Sequence record: NC_041917.1
Length of the DNA: 64,000 nucleotides
Reading direction: 5' to 3' (one strand)
How positions within the stretch are numbered: the stretch's first letter is position 1; every line of letters starts with the position of its first letter. The position numbers were made by a program, and so were the translations under genes. Positions 3,413 through 38,203 of this stretch are shown in pieces. The notes below the pieces were generated by a model. The model was not told where the DNA came from and did no database searches. It saw nothing but the letters and a program-made list of their open reading frames with translations.

Positions 3413-3537
3413 GGCGAGTTAGCTCAGTTGGTAGAGCACGTAGAAACCCAAGATTCAAGTACTTGAATCTTACAGCAACAATAACTCATACACTTTTAAT
3501 GTCGTGGTCGTTGGTTCGAATCCAACACTCGCCGCCA
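3413..3537 (+). tRNA. tRNA-Lys(UUU) interrupted by a 49-nt insertion (3441-3489)
   Basis: Acceptor GGCGAGT/ACTCGCC plus G-CCA; CG|ACA-CTTTTAA-TGTCG after removal; T-arm GTTGG-TTCGAAT-CCAAC. Confidence 0.9.
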
Positions 3538-34909: not shown

Positions 34910-35043
34910 TTCATGGTGGGTTCGTTTTAAGAAAAAAATGAATGAACCTGTAACAATGTATCATTTTCATATAGCTATGGCATTCCTTATAGGGTACTTC
35001 GCAGCTACTATGGTCATGATAATTTTAATGGTTGGACGTTAAT

Positions 35044-35361
35044 ATGAGCAAATTCTTTGTTGTTCGGGTACAAACTAATTCTGATTATAACCATATCCGC
35101 ATGGATAAATGGAATACGCCAGTACGAACCAATATATTTTCGGAATGTACTAATTTTGAAAGCAAAGAATCTGCTCTAGAAATGATAGAGAAGTTCATGC
35201 TGGTTAGTACTTTCTATCCTCATGAAGTACTATGTTGTGATTTAGAAAATAATCCACCAGTATCTGTGGTGGCGACTTGTACATTTGTTAAGAAAAAAAA
35301 TGGTAAATTCGGATTACACGTACAGGATTTAACTGTTGGGGCAAGCCATCGATCAAGCTAA
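35044..35361 (+). CDS. hypothetical protein
   Basis: ORF track. Confidence 0.6.
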   Translation: MSKFFVVRVQTNSDYNHIRMDKWNTPVRTNIFSECTNFESKESALEMIEKFMLVSTFYPHEVLCCDLENNPPVSVVATCTFVKKKNGKFGLHVQDLTVGASHRSS

Positions 35362-35440
35362 AAAATGTTTAAAATGGATTGACAACAATGGAATTCAATG
35401 ATATAGTACTTGTCATAATTTGCTTATTAAGAGGTTTAAT

Positions 35441-35851
35441 ATGGCATCAGCTTTAATCAATAAACTTTCTGAAAAAAATAAGTACGATGAACTCGATCCA
35501 CGATTAAATCGTATCATGTTTTTAATCGATATTTTCAAAGAACGTGAAGAAAAGTATCGTGAAGTTATTAAAGTTCGTAAAAATCAAGAACGTGCGTTTG
35601 AATTAAGTAATTCTAAACGGCAAAATTATTCAGTAGTTTATACTGAACATACCGTTTTCGGTCGTACTATGAAGTTATGTGATAGTACTGAGGGTGATTT
35701 GGAATATAAACTGATTGAATTTGGTCGTAAGATTTCAAAGATCATCAGTGCTACACCGGAAATGGTTCAAAATGAAAAGGTTGCAAGCTTCCTTTATAAT
35801 ATGGAATTCAAGTCAAACGAATATAAAAACAAGCATCAATATGATCATTAA
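35441..35851 (+). CDS. hypothetical protein
   Basis: GAGG RBS; promoter upstream. Confidence 0.7.
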   Translation: MASALINKLSEKNKYDELDPRLNRIMFLIDIFKEREEKYREVIKVRKNQERAFELSNSKRQNYSVVYTEHTVFGRTMKLCDSTEGDLEYKLIEFGRKISKIISATPEMVQNEKVASFLYNMEFKSNEYKNKHQYDH

Positions 35852-35958
35852 ATAAAAAAAAGACTTGACACCACCGTTCATTATGATATACTGAACAGGC
35901 TAAGAAGGAAGTTCACCACGAAGCCATACCGAGGCTTCAAAATAAAATAAAATAGTAC

Positions 35959-35987
35959 TTGACAGACGAAACGCTAGATGGTACTAT
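35959..35987 (+). promoter_or_regulatory. sigma70-type promoter upstream of large RNA candidate
   Basis: TTGACA-N17-TACTAT with TGG extended -10. Confidence 0.7.
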
Positions 35988-36089
35988 GTAGTCTCTAAAG
36001 AAGACATACGATTAACTAGAAAGAGGATTGAACGCAAATGTAACAGTTTAACTATAATCTTTTATAATATAACCTAGTCGAATCTAAAA

Positions 36090-36945
36090 AATTTATTCAG
36101 CAGTAACAGTTGCAGGGTGGAATGTCTCTACTCTGACAAACAATGAGGGATACGATCATGAAGTAATTTAAACACTTTAAACATCGATCTTAAATATTGC
36201 CTGAGTTAAAGTGCAGTACGGGACGGCGATAAGCAAAGTTGCCTTCTACTATGATCTGCATGACTACATTGCAAATGAACGTGTATCCATTGAAATGGTA
36301 CAAGTGGAGAGGAAACCGATTCACGTGGTACAACCAGTAATCGGCAGAGAATCGTTGAAGCTGTTCATGTTGACTTCGCCATTCAAAGTAATGGCAAGCT
36401 ACTTAGTACTGGAAGTGTATATTTTGTCGTATCATCACATTATAGGGGACATGAAGCCCGTATAATGGGGGTTACGCGGGGATTGCCAGCAGGATTAAGT
36501 AGACAATATGAGGGAAACACGACTAACTGAACACGGTTAGATGAAGTCAATGAAGTGACTTTCCCCTGATACGTAAGTTGATACGTCAGTGGGTTCCGGT
36601 AGACGCAGGCCGGAGAGTGTTTCAAACAAGTGCAAGTTGTACAGCGTAGGTACAACACCCTTTCGAGGGAAGCTGTGAGAAGCGGCACTTGTCGAACATC
36701 CCGAACGATGTTCACACAAAGACTTGCAGTACTACGAAGTTTAATGCTATAATCAGTTCGGTGAGGACTAGCATTAAGCGATTTCAACGCCCCTACGGTA
36801 CGTACCATAATGTCGTACCTGTTCTGTGGCAGAGCATAGCCGACTAGCTTAGAACTAGATGCTCAATTACCCACAAGGGTCAACCCAAGTGAGGTAAAGA
36901 TGTTTCGGATGCAGTACAAATCGGTGGTGGAAACACCACCAACTT
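36090..36945 (+). ncRNA. candidate large structured ncRNA (~850 nt)
   Basis: No credible gene; visibly G+C-richer; nested hairpins with UUCG/GAAA-type loops; boundaries approximate. Confidence 0.6.
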
Positions 36946-36965
36946 TTAAATTAGAGGATATTATC

Positions 36966-37115
36966 ATGAAAGAATATATTGTAGAGTACTTTTTACCAAA
37001 AAGTTCAATTCCTTTAGCAACTCGTCAATTCGCACATTCCGAAGCAAATGCACGAAGTGCAGCTAAAGCAGAAAAGGGACAGGATATAATTATTCGTAGT
37101 ACCCGCCTTGCATAA
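36966..37115 (+). CDS. small hypothetical protein
   Basis: GAGGA RBS; terminator 37141-37167. Confidence 0.6.
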   Translation: MKEYIVEYFLPKSSIPLATRQFAHSEANARSAAKAEKGQDIIIRSTRLA

Positions 37116-37210
37116 TAACTATTAAGTAAGTAAAATTGAGAAAAAGCCAGTTAACGCTGGCTTTTTCTGTTGGATAAAATCAATTGTTGTAATTTTGTAC
37201 GGAGAAAAAT

Positions 37211-38203
37211 GTGAGCATCAAAAAGCTAAACTTAGATGAAATTCAGGATGAGATTCTAGATGAGTGTTTTAACAGTGAAGATAAAACACTTGACTCGTTA
37301 GTTGTCGATGAAGATGATTTCGAAGTAGAAAGTACTGAAGAAGTTATCGATACTGGTCTAACTATGGATAAGATTAAATCCAAAGTAAAAACAGAGCAGT
37401 ACATCAGTAATGAAGTTTTAGTTCGTAATGTACAGAATAATATTGATGTTGAACGTTCAAAAGAACTTCTAATCATGTTCAACAGTGGTTTAGTGTATAA
37501 CGAAGCAAAGAACTGTACTTGTAACATTCCGTTCCAAGATAAAGTACAATACGGTTTTGAAGGATTAATGAAAGCTATCTATGGTTTCAATACAAACTTC
37601 AAAACAATGTTCAGTACTTATGCAACTACCGCGATCCGTCAACATATGTACCGAAACGGAAACAACGATGTGCGTATGGTAGCGTTACCAGAGCATCTAT
37701 CAATGCACAATATTCGCATCCAGAGCTTCATTGAGAAGACCATGCAGGACAGTACTGGCTACCCTACGCACGAACAGATCTCAGAGGGTACGGGCATTGA
37801 CATTCGTTCAGTGAAGCGTATAATGAACTACAACAGCAACACATTCAGCATCGACACCCCAATGAATCGCGGTGGGGATGAAGGGTCACAACAGACTCTA
37901 AAAGATATGATTCCTGGTGAAAGTGGGGATTACATCGTAGATGAACGTTGTGTAAGTAAAGACTTCCTAAGCACAATGGAAGATATTATGAATGAACTAG
38001 AAGAACATGAACGTGTATTGTTAGGTTTAGTTCATGGTTTAGATGGTTATCGTATTCATACATTTGATGAAATTATTAGTACTGGATATATCGACAGTAC
38101 TGGTAAGTATGTTTCATCTAAAGCAACATTATCTCGCCGTTATAGTGCTGTGATGGATAAAGTACGCCGCATTGTTGAACGTAAACAAATCAGTTTTGAC
38201 TAA
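37211..38203 (+). CDS. sigma-70 family RNA polymerase sigma factor
   Basis: Region 2 GLMKAIYGFN..FSTYATTAIRQ, ..VALPEH, region 3 PTHEQISEGTG, SIDTP. Confidence 0.85.
   Translation: MSIKKLNLDEIQDEILDECFNSEDKTLDSLVVDEDDFEVESTEEVIDTGLTMDKIKSKVKTEQYISNEVLVRNVQNNIDVERSKELLIMFNSGLVYNEAKNCTCNIPFQDKVQYGFEGLMKAIYGFNTNFKTMFSTYATTAIRQHMYRNGNNDVRMVALPEHLSMHNIRIQSFIEKTMQDSTGYPTHEQISEGTGIDIRSVKRIMNYNSNTFSIDTPMNRGGDEGSQQTLKDMIPGESGDYIVDERCVSKDFLSTMEDIMNELEEHERVLLGLVHGLDGYRIHTFDEIISTGYIDSTGKYVSSKATLSRRYSAVMDKVRRIVERKQISFD

Follow-up and report, generated by a model that had tools for sequence, protein, structure and literature searches.

What is encoded by 1,114 bp of phage DNA in which no credible gene can be found? 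The stretch in question (35852-36965) belongs to a 64,000-nt segment of sequence record NC_041917.1, called here the window, and the region that we analysed around it (35850-37200) is identical (100%) to positions 329004-330354 of Serratia phage BF (KY630187, Eneladusvirus, 357 kb). An original prediction, made from the letters of the window alone, had placed here a large, highly structured noncoding RNA (ncRNA), behind a strong promoter and upstream of a sigma factor gene. The comparison with related phages presented here gives good support to the view that the locus is an independent gene for a large, modular and highly structured ncRNA, whose family is absent from Rfam 15. As a whole, our explanation (a new RNA gene, the way in which it is expressed and a role of its product in trans) is the best that we can offer, with a probability of about 60%.

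Results

Covariation and architecture of the RNA

The BF sequence taken singly folds with a z-score of -4.3 if read as + strand and of -3.9 if read as - strand. Because both strands score alike, folding energy alone cannot discriminate, and it is covariation in homologues that decides. We used a non-redundant set of 12 sequences from about six lineages, with 50-70% identity between lineages, and across these lineages the structure is conserved and covaries, bearing out the idea of a large, highly structured ncRNA. RNAalifold, applied to 7 sequences, predicted 118 pairs, with compensatory double changes in 47. We then wrote a model of 54 pairs for the 170 nt that align best (36614-36783), which includes two tertiary pairings and is called core B, and compared it with 500 shuffles and with controls in which the partners were slid by 1-3 columns. 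In this model 99.8% of 587 cells are paired and 25/54 pairs show double changes, values that 0/500 shuffles reach, the slid controls staying at 30-43%. A second model, core A, consists of 24 pairs (three well-aligned hairpins and the closing helix), with 94.1% of cells paired and double changes in 11 of the pairs; again 0/500 shuffles reach these values and the slid controls give 24-53%. Covariation in homologues was one of the checks that the original prediction had called for. The minimum-energy fold of the BF sequence by itself yields the same core helices. The non-Watson-Crick cells comprise 54 G.U against 16 other mismatches; this excess of G.U establishes the + strand as the folded strand, and speaks against an element acting at the DNA level or in antisense.

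The predicted primary transcript of the structured ncRNA (~960 nt, + strand) runs from 35993 to 36950, ends that we infer from a promoter and a terminal hairpin. We set the start at ~35993 because the predicted transcription start lies there, and an invariant 24-nt motif (36023-36046) is thereby included. The limits given before, 36090-36945 and ~850 nt, located the RNA correctly but not its start or its size.

This 5΄ motif, GAGGATTGAACGCAAATGTAACAG, is identical in all members of the family save for 2 variable positions, and occurs a single time in the window even when 3 mismatches are allowed. It contains a Shine-Dalgarno-like GAGGA and, at a spacing of 10 nt, an ATG-TAA start-stop (36038-36043); given this long spacing and the invariance of the entire 24-mer, this mini-ORF (open reading frame) is not a simple ribosome-binding site. 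A pairing of the motif with 36724-36733, proposed by RNAalifold on one alignment, found no support in the covariation scan and was discarded. Domain 1 (36026-36370) is closed by a long-range helix between GATTGAAC (36026-36033) and GTTCATGT (36363-36370), or GAUUGAAC/GUUCAUGU as RNA, which is found, invariant, in 12/12 sequences. Inside the domain, a hairpin near 36284-36300 covaries (GUAC/GUAC versus GGAU/AUCC).

All helices of the original prediction proved to be present at the positions given there, and they take their place in this architecture. The hairpin GCCAT-loop-ATGGC at 36378-36395, first seen as GCCATT (36378-36383) pairing with AATGGC (36390-36395), has one stem position that appears as A-U, G-C and C-G. 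The core A junction (36514-36623) is closed by GAAACAC (36514-36520) and GTGTTTC (36617-36623) and holds hairpins at 36523-36540, 36543-36562, 36563-36593 and 36595-36614, the fourth of which was read by eye only; the first is the helix CTAAC (36523-36527)/GTTAG (36536-36540) of the original prediction. In core B (36626-36779), a three-way junction (36626-36692) is formed by ACAAGTGC (36626-36633) and GCACTTGT (36685-36692), enclosing GTTGTAC (36636-36642)/GTACAAC (36650-36656) and a further hairpin (36658-36669). The latter had been written as CCC-TTTCGA-GGG; the hairpin is real, but its parse is CCCT-TTCG-AGGG, with a UUCG tetraloop. The junction is followed by the hairpin GAACATC (36694-36700)/GATGTTC (36707-36713), and by another at 36739-36779 with an inner hairpin at 36753-36764. 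The 3΄ domain (36788-36915), closed by CCGA (36840-36843) and TCGG (36905-36908), is highly conserved in sequence in 8 members and shows double changes in 2 pairs only.

Two tertiary pairings tie core B together. A loop-loop (kissing) pairing joins the hexaloop CCGAAC (36701-36706) to GTTCGG (36756-36761), with 6 pairs in 11/11 sequences; in the Yersinia phages the two loops change together to CCAAAC and GUUUGG, one G-C pair becoming A-U. The CCGAAC/GUUCGG pairing is thus supported, although contacts within one molecule and between molecules would look the same in an alignment. The second is a pseudoknot between the loop CGTAG (36645-36649) and CTACG (36732-36736), with 5 pairs in 11/11 sequences, and its only variation is an A to G change that gives U.G in 3 sequences.

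Distribution and modularity

By blastn, the region is present in 18 phage records. Eight BF-like phages of Erwinia and Serratia show 98-100% identity, and CBB, GAP32, fHe-Yen9-03/04, Kaldavass and XbC2 show 68-74%. Each relative has, in the same place, a stretch without a conserved gene, from ~580 bp (fHe-Yen9-03) to 1.6 kb (XbC2), upstream of a gene for a 49-aa protein and of the sigma gene; the predicted RNA ranges from 519 nt (Yen9-03) to 1,245 nt (XbC2). Pattern scans with the invariant 5΄ motif added 6 metagenomic jumbo-phage contigs (349-371 kb and shorter ones). They also returned three matches in bacterial genomes (Vibrio, Bifidobacterium and a Saprospiraceae metagenome-assembled genome), which we rejected as chance matches of the motif. 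Looser scans, based on the loops or on two patterns of 15-16 nt, returned chance matches for the most part and no new locus that fits the family profiles. More distant phages of the RaK2-like group (7t3, Hallingskeid, 121Q and RaK2) carry densely packed genes before the sigma gene, and the covariance model of the RNA finds nothing there. As far as these sequence searches go, the family is confined to jumbo phages of the Eneladusvirus/Mimasvirus type.

Within the family, whole domains come and go. The Yersinia phage Yen9-03 (L005 in our numbering of the compared records) differs from the near-identical Yen9-04 (L004) by a clean deletion of ~150 nt, which takes out the interior of the domain-1 helix alone and leaves Yen9-03 without its 5΄-domain interior. 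The 3΄ domain is missing from the Yersinia phages and from contig L035, and largely from GAP32; L035 has kept the 5΄ domain, and its core has diverged past detection. The most extreme case is contig L042 (Ga0308166_1000037, 349 kb; 333-1200), which retains the promoter, the 24-nt 5΄ motif and both the small and the sigma gene, with ~350 nt of unrelated sequence and a ~70-aa ORF in place of the large RNA. Since L042 keeps the motif without the rest of the RNA, the 5΄ motif should have a role of its own.

A different stretch was noticed in Escherichia phage 121Q (L015:4973-5694), where 720 nt without a gene lie just downstream of the sigma gene, with a G+C content of 0.39 against 0.34 and no Rfam match. 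Part of it resembles RaK2 and 7t3 (L013:8113-8529, annotated with nothing but tiny minus-strand ORFs), and it may be another conserved noncoding element.

Coding potential and annotation

The gene-free stretch extends from the end of BF_0504 (35851) to the ATG of a small ORF at 36966 and holds short, unconvincing ORFs only; the estimate of ~1.1 kb without a credible gene was therefore accurate. It had also been described as richer in G+C, and indeed the G+C content rises from 0.30-0.35 in the flanks to 0.45-0.48 at 36300-36900. One could argue that BF_0505 (minus strand, 36440-36808, 122 aa), which is annotated in GenBank, or an ORF of the + strand, is a real gene and the structure incidental, and in Kaldavass six small minus-strand ORFs have been called in the homologous region (L006:1436-2686). 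We find this scarcely credible. The stretch homologous to BF_0505 has stops in nearly every frame in all relatives, its longest open run being 54-99 codons against 122 in BF; the lengths of the homologous regions differ by non-multiples of three; no ORF of the region matches Pfam or PHROG; CBB and XbC2 have no gene annotated there, and GAP32 one 168-nt ORF only; and the substitutions are paired across helices, without codon periodicity. The coding reading is thus already contradicted by the sequence comparison, by which BF_0505 is almost certainly spurious, as are, almost certainly, the six small minus-strand coding sequences of Kaldavass. The annotation of BF_0506 is also corrected: the gene starts at 36966, where its homologues start, and not at the annotated 36900.

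Promoters and 3΄ end

The RNA gene has its own transcription signals. The main promoter, P2 (35959-35987, + strand), is of sigma-70 consensus type, TTGACA-17-TACTAT with an extended -10 TG and an A-rich upstream tract (35940-35955); its -35, spacer and -10 are kept in all relatives. The strong promoter noted at 35959 is thus confirmed, and it is conserved and usually doubled: in 9/13 lineages a second consensus promoter precedes the main one by 88-116 nt. In BF this is P1 (35865-35892, + strand; TTGACA-16-TATACT, extended -10 TG), which matches 11/12 consensus positions. P1 lies 94 nt upstream of P2, in a tandem layout that recalls the P1-P2 promoters of ribosomal RNA, with a short hairpin GAAGCC...GGCTTC (35920-35938) between the two. 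The window has 8 copies of the P2-type promoter on its + strand against 1.1 expected, several of which adjoin transfer RNA (tRNA) genes.

Two further promoter-like sequences were seen. Inside the sigma factor ORF there is a perfect 12/12 sigma-70 consensus, TTGACA-16-TATAAT (37797-37824), at a place where the G+C content climbs locally to 0.42-0.47 (37500-37950). Inside the RNA core, an extended -10-like TGcTATAAT (36745-36753), with a TTG 18 nt upstream, is nearly invariant; it is possible that it works as an internal promoter at the DNA level, its TG being already explained by a covarying helix.

At the 3΄ end, the hairpin GGTGGTG-GAAA-CACCACC (36923-36940), another helix of the original prediction, is followed by AACTTTTAAATT, and the whole (36923-36950, + strand) could be a leaky intrinsic terminator or another 3΄-end signal. 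Most lineages have here a G+C-rich terminal hairpin, unrelated in sequence, followed by NNCTTTTAA (NNCUUUUAA in RNA form), with CTTTAAAATTTTAA in its place after the RNA end of the Yersinia phages. In 6/7 lineages folded, the energies of the terminal hairpins lie between -11.9 and -18 kcal/mol (z from -2.6 to -6.1); the RNA end of GAP32 folds no better than shuffles (z -0.57). Judged by its sequence, the hairpin at 36923-36950 looks like a weak terminator. The gene after the RNA begins ~20-70 nt downstream and has no promoter of its own; in BF there is no room for one between 36950 and the ATG at 36966, so that some read-through from the RNA promoters is required. The unit is closed ahead of the sigma gene (37211-38203) by a strong bidirectional intrinsic terminator (37139-37168, + strand), which has a T-run after its 12-bp stem.

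We also looked for the region in sequencing runs. Two DNA sequencing runs cover the whole 5.5 kb examined. Each of two RNA-type runs yields one contig of ~150 nt; the two contigs (36526-36676 and 36760-36907) fall within the RNA, and the flanking genes are all but absent. These runs, of which one is probably DNA, had been picked by their match to the sequence itself and have a depth of 1-4, so they speak for presence only and give no transcript ends.

Genomic neighbourhood

The element lies in an early, + strand region of phage BF, with an array of 22 tRNA genes ~10 kb upstream of it. By the Rfam scan, the window has at least 22 tRNA genes, at 3413-26264, and protein genes lie between the last of them and the RNA start at 35993. 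One tRNA-model match (3413-3534) spans 122 nt, far above normal tRNA length, and may hold an intron or an insertion. The link with tRNAs known from other large phage ncRNAs, to which the original prediction had drawn attention, is therefore loose here, the nearest tRNA being ~10 kb upstream and not adjacent. Its other positional claim, that the RNA lies upstream of the sigma factor gene, is right as to position, but the two are not directly coupled, the 49-aa gene and the terminator at 37139-37168 intervening.

In every lineage the 49-aa gene (BF_0506, phrog_36312; 36966-37115, + strand), which would be co-transcribed with the RNA, is found after the RNA or its 5΄ motif and before the sigma gene. 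It is not always the next gene: most relatives have an HTH_37 (helix-turn-helix) regulator between the RNA and the 49-aa gene. Immediately after the terminal hairpin, BF has the 49-aa gene; CBB, GAP32, Kaldavass, XbC2, L034 and L035 have the HTH_37 gene; Yen9-04 has a gene for 126 aa, pEa_SNUABM_49 one for 155 aa, and L031 yet another ORF. The terminal hairpin with CTTTTAA stays despite these changes. This variation of the next gene between lineages points to a self-contained RNA module and not to an expression platform tied to one gene. In the Erwinia phage pEa_SNUABM_49 (L002:2596-3063), and likewise in the Erwinia phages _44 and _50, the extra 155-aa gene sits exactly between the terminal hairpin and the 49-aa gene, in a sequence otherwise 98% identical to BF.

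The 49-aa protein is modelled with high confidence (predicted local distance difference test score, pLDDT, 93.5) in a beta-beta-alpha-beta fold. T7 Gp2 is an inhibitor of the host RNA polymerase. Compared with Gp2 (4lk0_M), the model gives a Z of 7.2, a template-modelling (TM) score of 0.71-0.74 and a root-mean-square deviation of 1.7-2.2, values of Z <8 being common among unrelated small folds; the N-terminal domain of eL20/LX, with a Z of 7.7, scores equal to or above Gp2, also in the range of common small folds. The 49-aa protein has no sequence match to T7 Gp2. With a sigma gene, an HTH regulator and a Gp2-like fold, the neighbourhood is one concerned with transcription control.

Comparison with known RNAs

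That the RNA belongs to no known class, as had been proposed, was borne out by a scan with the 4,227 covariance models of Rfam 15, which finds nothing in 35990-36950 either at gathering score across the window or at E<=10 across 35800-37250; weak matches were limited to the downstream terminator and to one microRNA model. In particular, the BF region matches no GOLLD, ROOL, RNase P, tmRNA (transfer-messenger RNA) or group I/II intron model in Rfam, and neither the relatives L008 and L035 nor L042 match GOLLD or ROOL. ARAGORN reports 0 tRNA or tmRNA genes in 35000-38000. In the literature we found no description of the BF RNA; a survey of 10,006 candidate viral structured RNAs contains elements of 30-151 nt only (PMC10690425), among which a fragment of the BF RNA may lie.

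Several known systems resemble it in part. GOLLD is likewise phage-encoded, at least ~0.8 kb long and of elaborate covarying structure, with one conserved and one variable part; it is expressed in lytic growth, in genomes that are tRNA-rich like that of BF, and loses or gains whole domains between lineages, as the BF RNA family does (PMC12286853). However, the hosts of GOLLD are Lactobacillales and mycobacteria, besides lake metagenomes, whereas the BF RNA is found in jumbo phages of Enterobacterales and Xanthomonas; GOLLD adjoins tRNAs, which are ~10 kb off in BF; and in the BF RNA, unlike GOLLD, the core is conserved and the 5΄ and 3΄ domains are both dispensable. ROOL is, like the BF RNA, a phage or prophage RNA with several pseudoknots and covarying kissing loops, and is highly abundant, with no protein partner known (PMC12286853). 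Its length is ~580-660 nt, against up to 1,245 nt for RNAs of the BF type, and constant co-transcription with a small protein gene, as seen for the BF RNA, is not a ROOL feature.

Another comparison is with PA5oct, a jumbo phage related to the RaK2/121Q/GAP32 group, in which RNA-seq revealed four long noncoding RNAs (lncRNAs), two of them at 2-5% of phage reads (PMC7318152). These, ncRNA001-004, are like the BF RNA gene-free and enriched in G+C (0.46 versus 0.385) (PMC7318152). With 236-619 nt they are shorter than the BF RNA, two lie in the terminal repeat, and they have no reported structure or covariation; we found no covariance-model or nhmmer match between them and the BF RNA, and none of its conserved motifs. 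OLE RNA is also large and ornate and adjoins genes for small proteins, which in its case bind it (PMC12054373, PMC12286853); it is a membrane-associated RNA of Bacillota, with no Rfam match to the BF RNA. Finally, 6S RNA is an abundant ncRNA that acts on the transcription machinery, and the BF RNA shares an operon-like cluster with genes for an HTH regulator, a protein of Gp2-like fold and a sigma factor. In contrast, 6S is a rod of ~184 nt with a central bubble, the BF RNA is branched, pseudoknotted and ~1 kb long, and there is no Rfam match to 6S. We had considered a 6S-like mimic of an open promoter formed by the invariant UAUAAU, and rejected it, most of the hexamer being in covarying helices.

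Discussion

How would such a gene be expressed, and what would its product do? The sequence signals suggest that the host sigma-70 RNA polymerase transcribes the RNA early and at a high level from the tandem consensus promoters. The transcript would fold into a 5΄ domain with its invariant long-range helix, a compact core and an optional 3΄ domain, the core being two multi-helix junctions tied by the 6-bp loop-loop pairing and the 5-bp pseudoknot. Most transcripts would end at the hairpin with its short U-tract, at ~36945, and the partial termination expected there would let some read-through serve as messenger RNA for the following small gene or genes, up to the terminator at 37139-37168. By analogy with known large RNAs, the folded RNA may act in trans, as a particle, during host takeover, an idea that we put forward tentatively and at rather less than even odds. 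Such a particle might be a scaffold or decoy that binds a host-takeover protein, namely the 49-aa protein, the host polymerase or the ribosome, and the RNA would then be neither a base-pairing regulator nor a riboswitch; the binding of the 49-aa protein is pure conjecture on our part. In a bolder version, which we think distinctly unlikely, the RNA would be the core of a new phage ribonucleoprotein or of an RNA-only assembly, which would multimerise by its complementary loops and/or bind the 49-aa protein, and would act on the host RNA polymerase or ribosome at the switch from host sigma-70 to the phage sigma.

Several points weigh against this picture. The support for the pseudoknot is weaker than that for the kissing pairing, because it shows no double change, and the 5΄ long-range helix has no double changes either. 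The family is narrow (about six lineages) and its sequences are related, which limits statistical power. The U-run of the terminal hairpin is only 4 long, 2-3 nt off the stem and interrupted by an A, so the RNA may mostly be the 5΄ untranslated region (UTR) of the downstream genes. Read support for a discrete, stable transcript is weak, and the trans-acting mechanism would derive from context and analogy only.

One alternative is that of a cis-acting leader, that is, a long structured 5΄ UTR or attenuator which sets the amount or the timing of the small genes (49-aa, HTH) through a leaky terminator and would be without function after its release. Transcription of the 49-aa gene has to come by read-through from the RNA promoters, there being no promoter room at 36950-36966, and this gene always accompanies the RNA; the terminal hairpin is sub-optimal as a terminator, and L042 does keep the promoter, the 5΄ motif and the small gene without the big RNA. 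We still judge such a leader unlikely, though to be taken seriously. A riboswitch expression platform has one constant gene, whereas the gene beside the hairpin varies here by lineage; no alternative antiterminator pairing was found, and the terminator stems are unrelated in sequence; whole domains are lost with the downstream junction unchanged; and ~80 covarying pairs with a kissing loop and a pseudoknot, over ~1 kb, go far beyond the needs of any known attenuator.

That the RNA could be an RNA-only homo-oligomer, a cage or ring like ROOL and GOLLD with CCGAAC/GUUCGG as the intermolecular contact, is suggested by analogy: it is large, ornate and phage-encoded, and joins a conserved core to variable domains; two of its hairpin loops, of 6 nt each, are exactly complementary and covary; and in ROOL a kissing loop first taken as a tertiary contact proved to be the intersubunit contact (PMC12286853). 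The BF RNA has, however, no homology to ROOL or GOLLD, and pairing within one molecule is simpler because the two loops sit on neighbouring hairpins 25 nt apart; we regard such an oligomer as improbable. A new class of ribozyme, whether self-cleaving, self-processing or acting on tRNA or other RNA, seems very improbable to us. Catalysis would suit the compact core, which is pseudoknotted and has invariant nucleotides left unpaired (among them GUACUACGAAGUU, UAUAAUC and the AGCGUAG loop), and the tRNAs from at least 22 genes of the phage require processing; against this, the RNA matches no known family of ribozymes, we saw neither exon-like flanks nor repeats, nothing points to a cleavage site, and in L035 the core has diverged past recognition with the 5΄ domain kept.

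What does this RNA add to the biology of jumbo phages? To our knowledge, only about a dozen classes of bacterial or phage RNA longer than 500 nt and with elaborate conserved structure are known, and we know of no biochemical function for most of them (GOLLD, ROOL, OLE, raiA). Two such classes turned out to be unprecedented RNA nanocages. The BF RNA adds a new family to the large ornate phage RNAs, one that is narrow in distribution and experimentally accessible, occurring as it does in cultivable lytic phages of tractable Enterobacterales (Serratia, Cronobacter, Yersinia, Pectobacterium and Erwinia). Nature has also provided deletion variants, which lack the interior of domain 1 (Yen9-03), the 3΄ domain (Yersinia phages), most of the 3΄ domain (GAP32) or nearly all of the RNA (L042), and Yen9-03 and Yen9-04 form a natural pair for probing the 5΄ domain. 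With cultivable phages, these natural variants, a defined promoter and terminator and a candidate protein partner, the function of a giant phage RNA becomes testable by phage genetics.

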